A stretch of 62,958 nt of DNA, counting the filler, from Octopus bimaculoides (taxonomy: Eukaryota): NCBI RefSeq assembly GCF_001194135.2. It is 9 parts of 9 records of this genome, joined end to end, with 100 filler letters (N's around TTAATTAATTAA, not from the genome) between each part and the next. Parts side by side here need not be neighbours in the genome. Positions count along the whole stretch, not along the records: positions 13,259 to 20,946 come from NC_068992.1; 8 more parts are not named here. One strand, written 5' to 3'. The position numbers and the translations under genes were made by a program. This document shows, one piece after another, positions 13,103 through 20,946 of this stretch (its first letter is position 1; each line of letters starts with the position of its first letter). The notes under the pieces were generated by a model, which made no database searches, was not told where the DNA came from, and saw nothing but the letters and a program-made list of their open reading frames with translations.

Positions 13103-13529
13103 GTGGTGGTGGTGGTGGTGGTGGTGGTGGTGTGTGTGTGTGTGTGTGTGTGTGTGTGNNNNNNNNNNNNNNNNNNNNNNNNNNNNNNNNNNNNNNNNNN
13201 NNTTAATTAATTAANNNNNNNNNNNNNNNNNNNNNNNNNNNNNNNNNNNNNNNNNNNNTCTCTGTTTCTGTCTGTCAGCCTCTCTCTCTGTGTATATATT
13301 TATCTATATTATACTAAAACTCAAAGTTTGTCTGTTTTCCTGCCCTTTGATAATAATGATTACAAATAATATAGTTAATAAAATTTACAAATATTTTAGT
13401 CATTTCTCTTTTTAAGAAGAAACAATCAAGTTGAAAATGTCGATTTGCGGCACTTCAGTGTGTCGTCGGAACCACTGCCGTCCATCTTTTTCTTACTTTC
13501 TTTTTTCTTACTATTTTATTTTTATTCGG

Positions 13530-15590
13530 AAGTCCTGCGGCGATGGGAAGGTGGTGAAGCATGCAGACCTGACGGATTAGAAGATGTTCAGGCTGCTGCT
13601 GATGCAAATGACAGCCACAAGCTTCACCATCTTATGAAGCAAGTTTTGGGCCTAAGAGCTCTGCATCAGCTCCTTTGTTTTCTAAGGAGACTTCAACTCT
13701 ATTTACTAAATCAAGAGAAATCACAGGTCGCTGGATTGAACACTTCTCTGAACTCCTAAACCATGAGTCAGTAGTGGATGAAACAGTAATTGATACTATG
13801 CAACAAAGACCTATCATTGGCTCCTTAAATTCCACGCCCTCAATAGATGAGGTGTTGACAGCAATAAGTAAATTGAATCTTGGTAGGGCACCTGGAAAGA
13901 ATGGAATTTGTGCTGAGGTCTTGCGATTTGGTGGTGATTACATCATAAGTCTCTTCATGAACTTATTAGTGCAGTCTGGAGGGATGGTGTAATGCCTAAG
14001 AACTGGAAGGATGCAATTATTCTTCCTCTCTATAAAAGAAAAAAAGCCAGAACAATGTGTGGTAACTACAGAGGCATTGCTCTACTATCAGCTGCTGGCA
14101 AGGTTCTGGCAACTATTCTTCTTACCCGTCTGAATGGGTGTCTCGTAAATGATGTCCTATCTGAATCTCAATGTGGCTTCCGATCTGGTAGAGGGACAAT
14201 GGATATGATCTTCACAGCAAGACAGATGCAGGAGGAGTGCTATGAGTAGAATATGGATCTTGTCCAGGTATTCGTTGATTTAACGAAGGCTTTTGATACT
14301 GTGAATAGGGCCTTGCTATGGAAAATACTTGGCAAACTTGGATGCCTGGATCACTTTGTATCTATGATTAAATCATTTCATGATGGGATGGAGGCTTGGG
14401 TCAATGCTGTGGTGTCACTGTGAGACCCATTCCTGTAGAGAATGGTGTCAAGCATCCTTGACCCAACTCTCTTTTCTTTGTACTTTACTGCTGCTTTTAC
14501 TCATGCTTTGCTAAGGTTAGCTCTCTGGGAATATATGTCAGATATCGATCTTCTGGCTGCTTCTTTAATCTGCGCCGATTTGCTGCCAATTCAAAAGTTT
14601 TCCAGTCTCTTATTCGTGACTTCCTTTATGCAGATGACTGTGACTTAGTCACTCATACAGTGCAAATTCTTATGAATCGTATTTCTGCTTCTTGCAAGGC
14701 ATTTAGACTCAGCATTAGCCTGGACAAGACTGTTGTAATGTTCCAGCCTGCATCGGCAAATCCATATGTGGAACCAGCTATCTTGGTTGAAGGAACAATT
14801 CTGAAAGTGGTAGACAAGTTTGTCTACCTGGGCAGCACACTCAGCCGTTCTTGCTCCCTGGATGATGAAATATCTTTCAGGCTGCAGAGATCAACTGATT
14901 CCTTCCGGTCTCTTCAGTCTCGTGTCTGGTCCCAGCATGGCATCACAGATCAAACAAAAACTGCTGTGTACTGTGCATGTGTACTGACATCGCTCTTTTA
15001 CTCATGTGAGACACGGACCCATTACAAACGTCATGTCAGGATCCTTGAACGCTTTCATCAGAGATATCTCAGACACATTATGAATGTTGGCCGGACCTTA
15101 AAAACTCCAGACACACAGGTCCTGAGGACAGCTGATATCTTGAGTATTGAGGCGATGGTGCACACGCACCGGTTACATTGAACTGGACACCTTATTAGAA
15201 TGAAGGATAACAGGATCCCTAAGCTGATGCTATATGGGGAACTTGTAAATGGAAAGAAACATCGGCAGAAACCAAGGCTGCAATTTAAGGACTGTATCAA
15301 GTCCTCATTAAAGGCCTGTGATATGCAGGAGAGTGACTGGGAGAGCAATACCTGTCATCGCTACAGATGGAGGAAGCAGGTTAAGGAAGGGGTCGACACT
15401 TTTGAGAGAGCACGTATGAAGAATTTAAGCATGAAGAACTTAAGGGTGCTGCTCGAAAGCATGCTGTTCGAAAGCGCACTACTGGTGTAGTGAATGAGGA
15501 AATTCTTGTTTGCAATGTTTGCAGTCGTATATGCTTGTCAAGAGCAAGGCTCATTAGCCATGAACGGAGCCGCAAATGCAAAATATAAGT
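13530..15590 (+). mobile_element. 5'-truncated, degenerate RTE-clade LINE (RT plus C-terminal C2H2-like motif)
   Basis: WKDAIILPLYK..CGNYRGIALLSAAGKVL, SQCGFRSGRGTMDMIF, FVDLTKAFDTV, VDKFVYLGS and CNVCSRICLS...LISH. Stops and frameshifts are present. Confidence 0.92.
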
Positions 15591-15599
15591 TAGTCCTAG

Positions 15600-15742
15600 A
15601 GCGCTGAATATCCCCGAGAACTACGTTAAGAGTACACGTGTGTGTGGAGTGATCAGCCATTTTCACGTTAATTTCACGTGCAGGCTGTTCCGTTGATCGG
15701 ATCAACTGGAACCCTCGTCGTAAGCGATGGAGTGCCAACAAC
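15600..15742 (+). mobile_element. Segment homologous to the 3' half of SINE family B, directly after the RTE ORF
   Basis: CGCTGAAT.TCCCCGAGAACTACG...GGAGTGCCAACAAC matches 12581-12723. Confidence 0.85.
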
Positions 15743-16462
15743 ATGTACGTTTGAAAGCCAGTATTTATGCGTGTCGTATCTGGGTAAAACTTTATGAGGA
15801 AATCCTTTACTGAACAAAAATACTGACAAATAGATCATCAATGATTTTAATCGTCTGATGATATACAATATATACAATTAAATGGATTAAATGGATTGAC
15901 TATGAACAGATTGGATAATCTATTCATTGTCACACACACACACACACACACACTCAGAGTCACGTGATTACGCGCACGCACAGTAGTCATAAATATTACC
16001 ATGTGTAGGAGAACATTAATTAGTAAAATTAAAGAGTTACAACTAATGACTCCTTTCCGGTACCTACTCCACCGATGTTGAAATCAATAATATTAATCCA
16101 ATGTGTACATTTATTCAGAACCGATTTTTATCAACAGGGAGTCAAATTCAAAGTAATAGCGTTGAGGAGAGGAAAGAAGTTGTTTCAAAAAGAATGACGC
16201 TAAACAAACGCGATATTGCCAACTGTCTGACATTTTCATGAAGGATGGATATTAAAATGAACATAATAGATAAGAATCCCGCTTTTTGAAGATATATAAA
16301 ATCAGTAAGCTTTTTGGTTTTCATTTCTCGTGTGCTTATTTGCATAATTCGGTATATATACAATTATATATTTCTTCATGTTATATTTTTCTGTATTCCT
16401 CTGTCTCGCTCATCCAATCAAATATTGTTGACGATTTAAATTTCATTAATTATGGTGGAATT

Positions 16463-19400
16463 ATGAAGCTACAGACATTGCTAAGCACATATGTTTTAAC
16501 CGTCCTTCTACAACATTCAGACGAGGAACAGCGAAGTTCAAATCCCCATCGGTATCTAACTCTGCAACTTGTGGCAGATATACATAATTACAACAACTGG
16601 AAATTTGGTCGTTTCTACTCAGTTGAAACCATGATTGATTTATCCACAAACAAAGTTTTTTTTTTCGAAGATCCAGTAACTCTGCGCGTTTACTTCAACG
16701 ATTTAGTTATTGGTTATCCCATCCAATTTTTGCAATTTGTCAACAATCAACCGTACGAAATGATTTATAACCATACCTGTGATAATAGTAATAAAAAGGC
16801 CGAAGCTTTCTGCCAACATTCATATATAGGTGGCAAATCGTACAAAACAAAAGGATACTGTTGTCCTGAAAGTCTGCAGATGCATTGCATTCTATATGAT
16901 CCTTTATGGTATTCTGTTAATACTCTCGGCAACCCTATAATTATTCAAAGTCTTATAGTAGAGGTTTTTAAAAAAGAAAGGCACGCTGAGAAAAAGGAGC
17001 AAAGTGTCGCAAAAAGCAATCGTTTTCTTGTCAACGGCAAAACTATCGAGAAGAGAGACGACAACCTTTATTTCACGGCCCGCGTTCTTCACCAGACCAA
17101 CTCTAGTTGTAGACAGATAATTTGTTCAAATTTAAATTATTTATTGATACCCGTTGCAAACTCGGCACTAAATAGAAGTCCACAGGCAAAACAGAACATA
17201 AAAGGTGTTAATGAGTACTTGCTTATTAAGAAAAAATATTTTGATTTAAAAGGAATATCTTGTGGAGCAACAGGAATTACTGCCGGTGCCGTTTTGAAAA
17301 AGATCGACCGTTGTACAAAATCCTTTGTCAAAACTTGTTTCAAGAATCAACCATTGAGTTTCTGGCTTGAAGATAATTTGAAAAAATTGAACAATGATGT
17401 GGAGTCAGACAGATCAAAATATTTCCTATCGCATTTTGCCAAGCTAATGGCTCCTTATACTGGAAGAATTCCCGGTTGGGTATCAAATAAATCGTTGTTA
17501 TTTGTAGAGAATAAAAGGCATTCAATTCGTGCACAGCTAGATATTATAATAAATCTTAACAAAGACGTTCTTCCTTCTGCAATTCCATTATTAAGTGAAG
17601 GATCCATTGGAACCTTGTACAGCCACCCATTGACAGATAAAGGCAGCCGATATGAGATTGGTATAAATGTAATTAACATAGGACTGATTACAGGAAACTT
17701 TAAAGTATTATTAAGCTGTGAACCTGATAGACAGTTCAAGACTTATACATTGACCCCATTTCAAGGAGAAACTGTGATATTTTTTCACAAAATTGGTATT
17801 GCTGAACGAAGCAGTGGGAACACTGTTCCTGGAAAAACTGCCAAATTACTGTTTCCAGTGCAGTGTGAAATAGAATTATGGAATGAAAATCAGAAAACAG
17901 TTAAGTCAAAATACCTTATTATACGAAAAAACAAGCTCTGTATATGTTTAGTTGGTTGTAAATGTAGTTGTGATCCACCATACAAATGTGAAGTGAAAAA
18001 AGCTAAAATGATTCATTCTCCGGTCACGGCTATTTTCCGAGACGAAACATTAATTGCTTTAGGTATAGTTTTACTTTTTCTTATGATACTTAACATGTTA
18101 AAACTCATTTTTGGATTTTGTTTTCCGATATCCATTGGCGAAGCAGGGCTATGTGTTTTTATAAAAAGCAACTATCAGTGTAAATATTTCGATAAAGATC
18201 TTCAATATAAAACTGTAAAATATAACAAAGACGGTTACCCTGTGCACCCCAAAACTAGGCAAAGAGTGCGTGCTCTGTCACAAAAGCAAATGGGGGTTAT
18301 GAATTTCTTTTTTTTCTTTTATTTGCCATTTATTGGCATTCATTGGCTTTTAGTACGAAAATGTATAAATAAAAAGAAATCAGATATAATGTGGAATAAA
18401 TTAGAAACGTCTATCCAACTGATTCACGATGGTGACGAAGAGCGTAGTTTGCACGAATCTTTACGAAAAACAACATGTCATTATTCATCATCAGATCACT
18501 CCGAATTGCCAGATCATATCGAAGAAAAACGGAGTGCTATACTAAATGAATATGGGAAAAGGGTATGCAGAACAAAACGTTGGGAAGATTCGATATGCAA
18601 ACCGTTGAAAAAGTCACAGAGACAATCTTCAGAAGAATGTCGACAAAAGACTAAATTTAAAAGCATGCTTGCTAATATCATGAAAACTGACAAGGATTCT
18701 ACGTCATCAGAAAGTCTAGAAAGTCAGAAAGGTAAGAGGGATAGATTATCAACATTTCCATTGACTAAATCGTCAAAACGACAGACGTATAGTACTTCTA
18801 TAGGACACGAGACTAGTTCATCATCGTTTGAGCCTCCATGTCAACCATCCAAAAGAAGTGTCACAAGTGATGCTATGAAAAGTACACTTCAGTTTCCACT
18901 ACCAGAATTAATTCTTGATGTTCCTCTAGAGAAGCCACCAGGTGAAACTGACAAAGAAAGGATTGAGCGTGGTAATGTAAGCGCAACAACTCTCTCTGAA
19001 ATTGAAGTAAGTGAAAATGTGAGTGATGCTTCCTGTAGAGAAGTTGGAAAAAAGCCGTCTAAGACCAGCATCTTTAAAAAGAAGTCAAAATCAGCAAAAC
19101 GGACCACATCACGTGTTTCCTGGACAGAGGCAGATCGTGAAGAACAAGTGTGCAGCAGCAAAGAAGATGGTCGGCGTTTTGGATTCAAAGGGAAATCACG
19201 GAGTAAAGAATCCAGGGATATAGGAGAAGTGCCATTTGGATCGTTAGGTGAACAGAGAGGTAGAGCATCACCAGCTAAGTTAGGTAGCCTTTCTGATGTT
19301 GAACATCGGAGAGAAGTTTCAGCTCAAGAAGTTGAGTGCATGCCTCTAGTAAAATCTATGAGTGCGTTTCCCGTACAGGAGAGAGAGCATGTTTCATTAA

Positions 19401-20946
19401 GACAACCATCGACTGCAATGCCATTAACTACGGAAAGGACGTATACTTCAAGCAGAATGCATCCAAGTGAAATCACAAGAAGTGACATACTACAAAGGTC
19501 AGTCATTTCACCGGATCAGAAAGAACAGAAAAGAGTCTCAGATGCTATATTATACCCCCCAACAACTCCCACATACACCAAAGAACCATCGGACGTTGCA
19601 TTTGATCAGCAGTTCGTTCGACGATCTACCGATGGCTTTCAGCATTTCTCCAAAGAACAACAACGAAGTCCGACATCTATGGTTATTTCTTTAGAACAAC
19701 CGCCAATTGAACCAATTATCGAGCAGAAGCAAGCATCTTCGTTAGAACAAGAGCCGAGTCAATTGTCTAGAAAGGAAATGCAGCATGTCTCCTTAGAACA
19801 GTTGCGAAGTAGACAGCGTAGTGAAGATATGCAAGTTGTCTCCTTAGAAGAAGAGATGAGTCCACTATCTACAGAAGAGATGCAAGAGATCTTCATGGGG
19901 CAGCCGAGTGGAGTTTCTGAGGAAGCGATACGGCGCGTTACTGGAGTCCAACAGTCGACTTCAAAAATTTCCACGGCTTCAGCACCTTGTTTCGAGATTG
20001 AAAAATTGCCACTACGTCAACAACATGAAGTGCTACCCACACAAGAACGAATGTACAAATCGATGGTAGAGCCAGTGACTCAAATTCCTGTAAAAGACAC
20101 TCTGTACAAATTGCACTCAGATGGGAAATTAGCTCGAAAAGACAAAGTAGCCTCTTCAGGAGTAGCGCAACAGAGAAAATCATCGAAAAAGGGACAATAT
20201 CGAGTATCCTTTTTTGATACACCTATATTAGCACCGAAAAAACAAGATATTACTTTTGTACCACCAGATGATATAACAAAACCGACTTCATCAATGTACG
20301 ATGAAAAACCAATAAGGATGAGAAAGAGATCTTCTTCAGTTGATCATCGAAGTCAGATATCCAGAAAAGACACAGTGGAGAGTTCTTTTGAACAACGGCC
20401 TAGTGAAACTTACAGAGAGGATGTCAAAGAAATTCTACCTACATATGATTCAAGAGGTGTATTTGAAGAACTGCATATTCCATCACCTGAAAAGCAGGCT
20501 TCAATGCTGTATGATACAGTGAGAGAGACGCCGCATGATATATCGGAAATGTATAGCCTGTTAACAGACCAAGTAAGTCAACCATCTGTTGAAAGAGAGA
20601 GTACTATCAGATCGATATCAGATGAGCGAAGTCAGATATCTGAAACAATGGGTATTCCGAGTTCAATAACGGATCGTCGAAGTGAAATATCTGAAAGAGA
20701 AAGTATTCCTAGTACAATGATGGATCAACGAAGTCGATTATCCGAAAGAGAGAGTACTATCAGATCGATATCAGATGGGCGAAGTCAGATATCTGAAACA
20801 ATGGGTACTCCGAGTTCAATAACGGACCGTCGAAGTGAAATATCTGAAAGAGAGAGTATTCCTAGTACAATGATGGATCAACGAAGTCGATTATCCGAAA
20901 GAGAGAGTACTATCAGATCGATATCAGATGCGCGAAGTCAGATATC
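16463..20946 (+). CDS. HAP2: Divergent HAP2/GCS1 (fusexin)-like membrane protein with a very long repetitive C-terminal tail; 3'-incomplete at an assembly gap
   Basis: The open frame runs from 16286 into the gap; M at 16463 begins a signal-peptide-like MKLQTLLSTYVLTVLL. HAP2-like motifs appear in the correct order: DPVTLRVY...GYPIQFLQFVNNQPYE (16670-16759), C..FCQ...GYCC (to 16864), HCILYDPLWYSVNTLG (16883), YLLIP, YLLIKKKYFDLKGISCGATG..C...TCFKNQ (to 17350), an Ig-like domain III region, CICLVGCKCSC...C (17939-17989), and hydrophobic segments at ~18050-18128 and ~18293-18355. The track's stop at 20998 lies in an artificial gap linker. Confidence 0.88.
19673..19927 (+). repeat. Coding tandem repeat, 5 diverged 51-bp (17-aa) units
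   Basis: TSMVISLEQPPIEPIIE / QKQASSLEQEPSQLSRK / EMQHVSLEQLRSRQRSE / DMQVVSLEEEMSPLSTE / EMQEIFMGQPSGVSEEA. Confidence 0.85.
20591..20946 (+). repeat. Coding 153-bp higher-order repeat (3 x 51 bp), at least 2.3 copies, running into the gap
   Basis: Units start at 20591, 20744 and 20897. Units 1 and 2 differ at 4 of 153 nt. Confidence 0.95.

Follow-up and report, generated by a model that had tools for sequence, protein, structure and literature searches.

To our knowledge, HAP2 (also called GCS1) is the one protein confidently known to be a gamete fusogen, and its mechanism is believed to rely on hydrophobic loops that are fixed by an invariant salt bridge. In Chlamydomonas, a 40-residue cd loop holds both fusion loops, and its R185 is paired with E126 in a salt bridge (Fédry et al. 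2017; PMC5332557); this arginine is required for gamete fusion as well as for liposome binding (PMC5332557). The Glu-Arg pair is invariant across the solved HAP2 structures and has been put forward as a hallmark of HAP2 (Fédry et al. 2018; PMC6089408). In Arabidopsis, deletion of the insertion helix abolishes HAP2 function (PMC6089408). On the other hand, the cd loop of Caenorhabditis elegans EFF-1 is acidic, not hydrophobic, and EFF-1 is required on both fusing membranes (PMC8784728). HAP2 has been described as lost from most bilaterians (Steele and Dana, PMC2766252). Here we describe a HAP2 homologue of Octopus bimaculoides in which the cd loop has collapsed. The gene lies in a window of 62,958 nucleotides (RefSeq assembly GCF_001194135.2; parts joined end to end), within the piece at positions 13259-20946, which comes from NC_068992.1, has 31-46% G+C and is the part analysed here. 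New in this work are the loss of the cd loop, found in all three cephalopod-type copies, the single-exon structure, and the purifying selection acting on the octopus homologue.

The gene is contained in a single uninterrupted open reading frame (ORF) of the + strand, on which the parts of the gene, its 5' flank and the upstream reverse transcriptase fragments given below also lie. It starts with an ATG at 16463 and comprises at least 1494 codons, and the frame is open from 16286 to the edge of the piece at 20946. Since the 3' end lies beyond this edge, the codon count and the length of the tail are lower bounds. A preliminary description of this DNA had placed a gamete fusogen gene at 16463-18355. 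Its start is retained here, whereas 18355 marks only the end of a second hydrophobic helix and the ORF continues to the edge. All the motif strings it quoted are present in the translation of 16463-20944 (PVTLRVY..YPIQFLQFVNNQPYE, HCILYDPLWYSVNTLG and DLKGISCGATG..C..CFKNQ).

We assign the encoded protein to the HAP2 family of class II fusexins with very high confidence. PF10699 is the sole Pfam family matched (71.3-74 bits, E = 8e-20 to 1e-20, for a gathering cut-off of 27.4 bits), over residues 56-428 (16628-17746; profile positions 31-418 of 515). With such E-values, the likeness to HAP2 is far beyond chance. A single-sequence search of the PDB sequences gave weak matches, five of the six being HAP2 chains. 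A profile built from 25 animal homologues matched the PDB HAP2 chains of Trypanosoma, Chlamydomonas, Cyanidioschyzon and Arabidopsis with E-values of 6e-69 to 4e-51. The protein keeps 15 of the 18 conserved Cys columns of other animal HAP2 proteins. Also retained are E99, which is the strand b Glu, and the ij-loop Gln (Q296), the residue whose Chlamydomonas equivalent, Q379, has a described role (PMC5332557).

The predicted structure leads to the same assignment. The AlphaFold2 model, computed from a 96-sequence alignment, has a mean predicted local distance difference test (pLDDT) score of 84.2 and a predicted template modelling score of 0.63. In a Foldseek search with this model, ranks 1-8 were all occupied by solved HAP2 chains (E = 6.6e-22 to 1.2e-19). 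Archaeal Fsx1 came below (~1e-12), then EFF-1 (~4e-10, rank 12 and lower); the class II proteins of hantavirus, alphavirus and phlebovirus also ranked after HAP2 and Fsx1, and the best predicted viral structure matched at E = 1.3e-12. The model thus predicts a three-domain class II fold that is closest to solved HAP2. The best structural matches, from Chlamydomonas, Arabidopsis, Trypanosoma and Cyanidioschyzon (5MF1, 6E18, 6DBS, 5OW3, 5OW4, 7S0K), have the same domain order and share the conserved Glu and Gln. EFF-1 and AFF-1 (4OJC/4OJD) are likewise membrane proteins of cellular origin with a class II fold, and their cd loop is non-hydrophobic. However, they form a separate family that lacks the PF10699 domain and matches the octopus model with E ~4e-10, as compared to ~1e-22 for HAP2; the parallel with the octopus protein is a functional analogy only. 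Hence, neither of the outcomes that the preliminary description had named as refuting its proposal, a missing PF10699 match and a predicted fold unlike the class II architecture, was observed, and the family and the class II fold that it put forward both agree with our results.

Two further sequences of the same type were available for comparison. The closest relative is a hypothetical protein of Octopus vulgaris (P0001; UniRef "Generative cell specific-1/HAP2 domain"), 57% identical to the window protein. Its locus, hereafter L001 (OX597825.1 at 71.67 Mb), contains an intronless ORF of 798 residues that begins with the same MKLQ start (L001 9290-11686). The second relative, P0002, is 36% identical over its full length and was retrieved from assembled contigs of three public sequencing runs. 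Judging from the derived features that it shares with the subfamily, P0002 would come from another cephalopod.

In each of the other animal HAP2 proteins aligned, strand c (GFCCxC) and strand d (SAHCLxF..WY) are parted by a loop that carries R-G-G-Q-D-C. At this site, the octopus sequence reads GYCC-PESL-QMHCILYDPLWY. Strands c (GYCC, residues 131-134) and d (QMHCIL, residues 139-144) of domain II (16853-16894) are thus connected by PESL, and the AlphaFold2 model shows these two strands with a tight turn between them (pLDDT 92). We measured the number of residues between GFCC and xxHC in the 51 representatives having both anchors. The loop is 4 residues long in the window protein and in P0002, likewise in L001 (PESV), and 8 residues long in three tick proteins (NCxxGxNC). 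In the other 46 of the 51 sequences it spans 22-297 residues, nearly all with R-G-G-Q-x-C. In addition, a hidden Markov model built from 22 non-cephalopod sequences aligned to each of the three cephalopod sequences in two pieces, skipping profile positions 162-197, which shows that the deletion is not an artefact of the multiple alignment. Exon skipping was also considered as the source of the deletion and was rejected: in the bivalve Solemya, strand c, the entire loop and strand d are all encoded by a single exon (residues ~150-202), and the cephalopod deletion therefore lies within an exon.

The profile-to-PDB alignment places the consensus Arg of the loop on Chlamydomonas T-R-A (184-186), that is, on R185. 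Hence, the window protein, L001 and P0002 all lack the Arg of the Glu-Arg salt bridge together with its whole segment. In the window protein, the Glu of the pair that corresponds to E126-R185 is kept (E99) and its partner is absent. Two of the 18 conserved Cys, located in the cd segment, are missing and both fusion loops are gone; the PESL turn contains no hydrophobic run that could correspond to the insertion element. In P0002, the Glu is itself replaced by Asn, as might be expected once the Arg partner has been lost. The bc region, beside the cd site, is polar and basic in all three copies. By comparison, the cd region of the solved HAP2 proteins is 40 residues long or otherwise elaborate, and the Glu-Arg salt bridge fixes its hydrophobic loops or helices. 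On these grounds, the octopus protein is probably incapable of inserting into membranes by itself. The word "intact" in the preliminary description therefore applies to the reading frame and not to the cd loop and conserved Arg. Its term "gamete fusogen" goes further than the data, since the loop and the Arg needed for insertion and fusion by Chlamydomonas HAP2 are deleted, and the alternative that it offered, a repurposed protein, still fully stands.

The nearest counterparts outside cephalopods are found in other invertebrates. Metazoan HAP2 proteins, such as those of Solemya velum (KAL5009314.1), Pecten maximus (XP_033735139.1) and Lineus longissimus (XP_064623729.1), share with the octopus protein PF10699, 15 of the 18 Cys, the NQP of the ij-loop, the stem (C.C..C.C.C), the anchor, the post-anchor module and the FFFY.PF helix. 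However, the octopus protein shares only 22-28% identity with the HAP2 proteins of other animals, in line with the earlier statement that it is strongly diverged. Four residues replace the ~35-residue bivalve and nemertean cd loop (RGGQDC), and the octopus tail, with its tandem repeats, is far longer. A partial parallel is seen in ticks (Ornithodoros XP_064484785.1, Rhipicephalus KAL1487266.1 and Ixodes CAN8032015.1, labeled "hapless 2-like"), in which the cd loop was independently cut to 8 residues and the Arg is gone. Unlike the octopus protein, the tick proteins keep both loop Cys; in the tree, they group with the arachnids.

An exhaustive search of representative sequences gave 135 relatives of the octopus HAP2 protein. 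After the cephalopod-type sequences come bivalves (Solemya, the top non-cephalopod match, then Pecten, "hapless 2-like", and Mytilus), followed by nemerteans and then by a spider, ticks and Hymenoptera. Neighbour-joining (a distance method; 616 columns, with bootstrap supports) places the three cephalopod-type sequences in one clade with 100% support. Their sister group is the bivalves (82%) and the nemerteans are next (66%), arachnids and insects being placed in a separate grouping. This pattern fits vertical inheritance within Mollusca rather than horizontal or viral acquisition. RefSeq already labels bivalve and nemertean proteins "hapless 2-like"; mollusc HAP2 is thus visible in databases and is not new in itself. 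A literature search on cephalopod or mollusc HAP2 found no paper. When a word-indexed protein collection was searched with the ectodomain and with a profile of the three cephalopod sequences, only the O. vulgaris protein was returned, and the window's own copy was not found. The public model of P0001 has 561 residues, starts at an internal Met and omits the first 237 residues, that is, the signal peptide and most of domain II.

The exon organization sets the octopus genes apart as well. In Solemya, the HAP2 coding sequence is divided among at least 18 exons across 45 kb, whereas the window gene and L001 consist of one exon each; in the window, the 4.4 kb of visible HAP2 coding sequence contain no intron. 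Because all introns are lost, the simplest account is that a processed mRNA was retroposed in the cephalopod lineage, so that the gene would have begun as a retrogene. The window gene and L001 belong to the same subfamily and share the collapsed cd loop (PESV in L001), the single exon and a nearly identical 5' flank and signal peptide. Their homology extends from ~480 bp before the ATG into the tail, where it stops near 18743. Within it, identity is strikingly uneven. Window 15985-16531 is 94-99% identical to L001 8815-9360, with ~94% over 15990-16176 and two mismatches in 348 bp over 16177-16524, a segment made of flank and the first 21 codons. Beyond 16524, identity falls abruptly to 60-80% across the remaining coding sequence. 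Short islands of near identity, even at synonymous sites, are also observed inside the coding sequence (for example 16711-16750).

Nei-Gojobori estimates for the window gene and L001 over 790 aligned codons gave a synonymous divergence (dS) of 0.56 and a nonsynonymous divergence (dN) of 0.33. Because a dS of 0.56 is incompatible with 0.6% divergence in adjacent non-coding DNA, the two copies are most likely old paralogues and not simple orthologues. Their 5' segment (promoter, 5' untranslated region (UTR) and signal peptide) has been homogenised in recent times, most likely through gene conversion. On this reading, the source of the window has to be O. vulgaris or a species very near to it. 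The sharp identity boundary resembles that of a gene-conversion tract. For this one pair of sequences, dN/dS is 0.59 over the whole alignment (95% confidence interval (CI) 0.48-0.73, bootstrap). It is lowest in the stem, anchor and post-anchor module (0.32, 95% CI 0.18-0.53) and reaches 1.06 in the domain III-like region (95% CI 0.62-1.86). Such values point to a gene that is constrained and presumably functional, yet fast-evolving.

Overall, the reading that we favour, and that we consider moderately probable, is that of a single-exon metazoan HAP2 that was retroposed, duplicated and homogenised at its 5' end, with a collapsed cd loop and no self-insertion. Of these elements, the family, the predicted fold, the loss of the loop and of the introns, the purifying selection and the 5' homogenisation are established by the data, whereas retroposition, gene conversion and all statements on function are deduced. 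The gene would descend vertically from a molluscan HAP2 gene. A processed copy would have lost all introns and later been duplicated, and the promoter, 5' UTR and signal-peptide segment of the old paralogues would have been homogenised recently, likely by gene conversion. With the scaffold (domains I, II and III), the stem, the anchor and the post-anchor module kept, the class II hairpin and trimer could still form. The cd loop being a tight β-turn, no loop would insert into the opposite membrane. If the protein merges membranes at fertilisation, copies would have to be present on both membranes, in the manner of EFF-1, or a partner protein would ensure attachment. Otherwise, a role in adhesion or recognition could be envisaged. 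EFF-1 is the closest functional precedent. There is a little under an even chance that the octopus protein still helps to bring membranes together or to fuse them, probably at fertilisation, either bilaterally or via a partner. In a broader and more speculative scenario, which we regard as rather unlikely, cephalopods turned a gamete fusogen into a loop-less, retroposed, duplicated and fast-evolving fusexin acting in an EFF-1-like or partner-dependent way, at fertilisation or in somatic fusion. If this were true, nature would offer in this protein a mechanism halfway between the HAP2 type and the FF type, and paralogues with a homogenised promoter and signal peptide and diverged ectodomains could aid species-specific gamete compatibility.

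As for function, the protein could have been repurposed away from gamete fusion, either to fuse somatic cells homotypically, as EFF-1 does, or to serve in adhesion or recognition without any fusogenic activity. The non-hydrophobic cd loop parallels EFF-1, with its acidic tip and its requirement on both membranes (PMC8784728). The duplication of the gene, a dN/dS of 0.59 overall and ~1 in domain III, and tails that are long, variable and repeat-rich would also be in keeping with a new role. Nonetheless, sequence and fold are much closer to HAP2 than to EFF-1. Moreover, fast evolution and duplication are just as typical of reproductive proteins. We find repurposing an unlikely explanation, though an alternative to be taken seriously. 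We are more doubtful about a canonical sperm-borne fusogen acting unilaterally, as in Chlamydomonas, Plasmodium or Arabidopsis, with other tip residues in place of the cd loop; such a fusogen would drive its domain II tip into the egg membrane, trimerise and fold back. In favour of it, the class II scaffold is retained in full, together with the stem, the anchor and the ij-loop signature, the gene is under purifying selection, and HAP2 tip regions differ greatly from one lineage to another, several animal groups having deletions there (PMC6089408). Against this, the cd segment is reduced to PESL without any hydrophobic run, the Arg and two Cys are lost, P0002 has exchanged its Glu for Asn, and the bc region is polar and basic in the three copies. 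HAP2 of Chlamydomonas and Arabidopsis no longer functions once the Arg or the insertion element is lost (PMC5332557, PMC6089408).

Other accounts concern the nature of the gene itself. A dead or dying processed pseudogene, that is, a retrocopy whose frame is open by chance, would explain the lack of introns, the decayed retrotransposon next to the gene, the absence of the protein from the databases searched and the fact that the O. vulgaris paralogue stops short of the conserved C-terminal domain. This is very unlikely in view of an ORF of at least 1494 codons in DNA of 33-44% GC and of a dN/dS significantly below 1 (95% CI 0.48-0.73). In addition, the three cephalopod-type sequences, only 36% identical, have 15 conserved Cys and their motifs in common, and the 5' regulatory block is maintained. 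That the locus is the class II envelope gene of an endogenous virus or retroelement, and not cellular HAP2, is extremely improbable. It is true that introns are absent, that reverse transcriptase fragments lie upstream on the same strand and that the class II fold is common to bunyavirus and alphavirus glycoproteins. However, HAP2 structures outscore every viral one by ~10 orders of magnitude, PF10699 is specific to HAP2, and a post-anchor module specific to animal HAP2 is present. Moreover, the tree is congruent with the species phylogeny (molluscs next to nemerteans; arthropods apart), and the reverse transcriptase fragments are LINE-like, broken and absent from the paralogous locus.

Several points weigh against the single-exon, loop-less HAP2 that we favour. 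Given the variability of HAP2 tips, another loop might supply the membrane contact. Introns may have been lost stepwise instead of by retroposition, the 3' end of the gene lying outside the piece. The paralogy of the two octopus copies is argued from a dS of 0.56 against 0.6% divergence in the 5' flank and from the end of homology inside the tail. Cephalopods may also possess a canonical HAP2 that has introns and a full cd loop, in which case the family described here would be a side branch. Finally, P0002 and Solemya share a C-terminal domain ending in KP.YPCLN, and this domain was found neither within 10 kb 3' of the L001 stop nor in the window piece; the O. vulgaris copy being devoid of it, some copies may be decaying.

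With the loop-less reading, cephalopods and, in part, ticks represent a natural experiment in which HAP2 is kept under selection without the element on which its mechanism is thought to depend. The case bears on whether the HAP2 scaffold can work without self-insertion, like EFF-1, and on the way in which fusexins switch between unilateral and bilateral modes. Cephalopods also join the short list of bilaterians that retain HAP2, and the locus is an example of a gene missed or truncated by automated annotation. CRISPR is feasible in some cephalopod species.

The protein has a type I topology, as judged from translation, hydropathy and the AlphaFold2 model, with an N-terminal segment resembling a signal peptide, a large ectodomain and a C-terminal hydrophobic anchor. 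The start codon and the signal-peptide-like segment (residues 1-19, MKLQTLLSTYVLTVLLQHS) occupy 16463-16519 and the segment is identical in the O. vulgaris ORF. The ectodomain (residues 20-525, 506 residues; 16520-18037) has the predicted class II fusexin fold and contains 18 Cys. It also has four N-glycosylation sequons: N103 (NHT), N213 (NSS) and N342 (NKS), which the preliminary description had listed, and N237 (NRS), which it had omitted. Cys is present at position 216 in all three cephalopod-type copies and at position 221 in the two octopus copies (17108-17125); both columns are free of Cys in 22 of the 22 other animal HAP2 proteins compared. These residues may form a new disulfide. The ij-loop, which is the PF10699 signature segment (CGATG...C...CFKNQP, residues 267-297; 17261-17353), contains C267, C284, C292 and Q296, all invariant columns of the 25-sequence alignment. 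A domain III-like β-sandwich (residues ~375-490; 17585-17932) is predicted from strands 380-487 of the AlphaFold2 model and from the profile alignment to domain III of the PDB HAP2 chains.

Downstream of this sandwich, the Cys-rich stem motif CICLVGCKCSCDPPYKC (residues 493-509; 17939-17989) displays six Cys conserved across animal HAP2 (C493, C495, C499, C501, C503 and C509). The transmembrane anchor and an adjoining hydrophobic stretch follow (residues 527-567; 18041-18163), with Kyte-Doolittle peaks at 531-549 (2.6) and 549-567 (1.94), an AlphaFold2 helix at 527-553 and then a short basic segment. The next block (18164-18352) comprises the post-anchor module (Y..KDL....V.Y..DGYPVHP.T..RVRAL) and the second hydrophobic helix (residues 607-630; 612-630 by hydropathy), and its pLDDT reaches 95-97. 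It corresponds to the consensus of animal HAP2 proteins, which generally have Y.E..L....V.YD..G.P.HP.T..RVR after the anchor and then a second helix, N..FFFY.PF..H. Pfam models neither the post-anchor module nor the KP.YPCLN C-terminal domain. If the second hydrophobic helix spans the membrane, the topology of the tail becomes uncertain.

The tail is rich in Ser, Glu, Arg and Lys and extends from residue 631 to beyond residue 1494 (at least 864 residues; 18353-20946), where it is interrupted by the edge of the piece. A search of the protein collection found no homologue of it. Tandem Repeats Finder identified an in-frame 153-bp (51-residue) tandem repeat at 20591-20946, with 2.3 copies that are 97% identical and made of 51-bp sub-repeats; the array meets the edge of the piece. 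In P0002, the tail carries an unrelated 11-residue repeat (TTGKQKEMFP-like).

An Rfam scan of the piece (13259-20946) returned no RNA family. Upstream of the gene, decayed reverse transcriptase fragments of a retrotransposon without long terminal repeats, of the long interspersed nuclear element (LINE) type, extend over 13445-15490, as short ORFs in shifting frames broken by frameshifts. One of them (13992-14249) matches Pfam RVT_1 with E = 2e-7. These fragments are a neighbour of the HAP2 gene and not a component of it, and no counterpart was found upstream of the O. vulgaris paralogue. The 5' flank common to L001 (15985-16462) is a putative promoter and 5' UTR, with a TATA-like run near 16355-16375. 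Directly upstream of the point where the L001 homology starts, a (CA)n microsatellite at 15930-15953 could correspond to the border of the unit that was duplicated or converted. Farther upstream, a 113-bp stretch (15623-15735) is 88% identical to L001 16721-16836, on the 3' side of the O. vulgaris gene, and is probably a short interspersed repeat.

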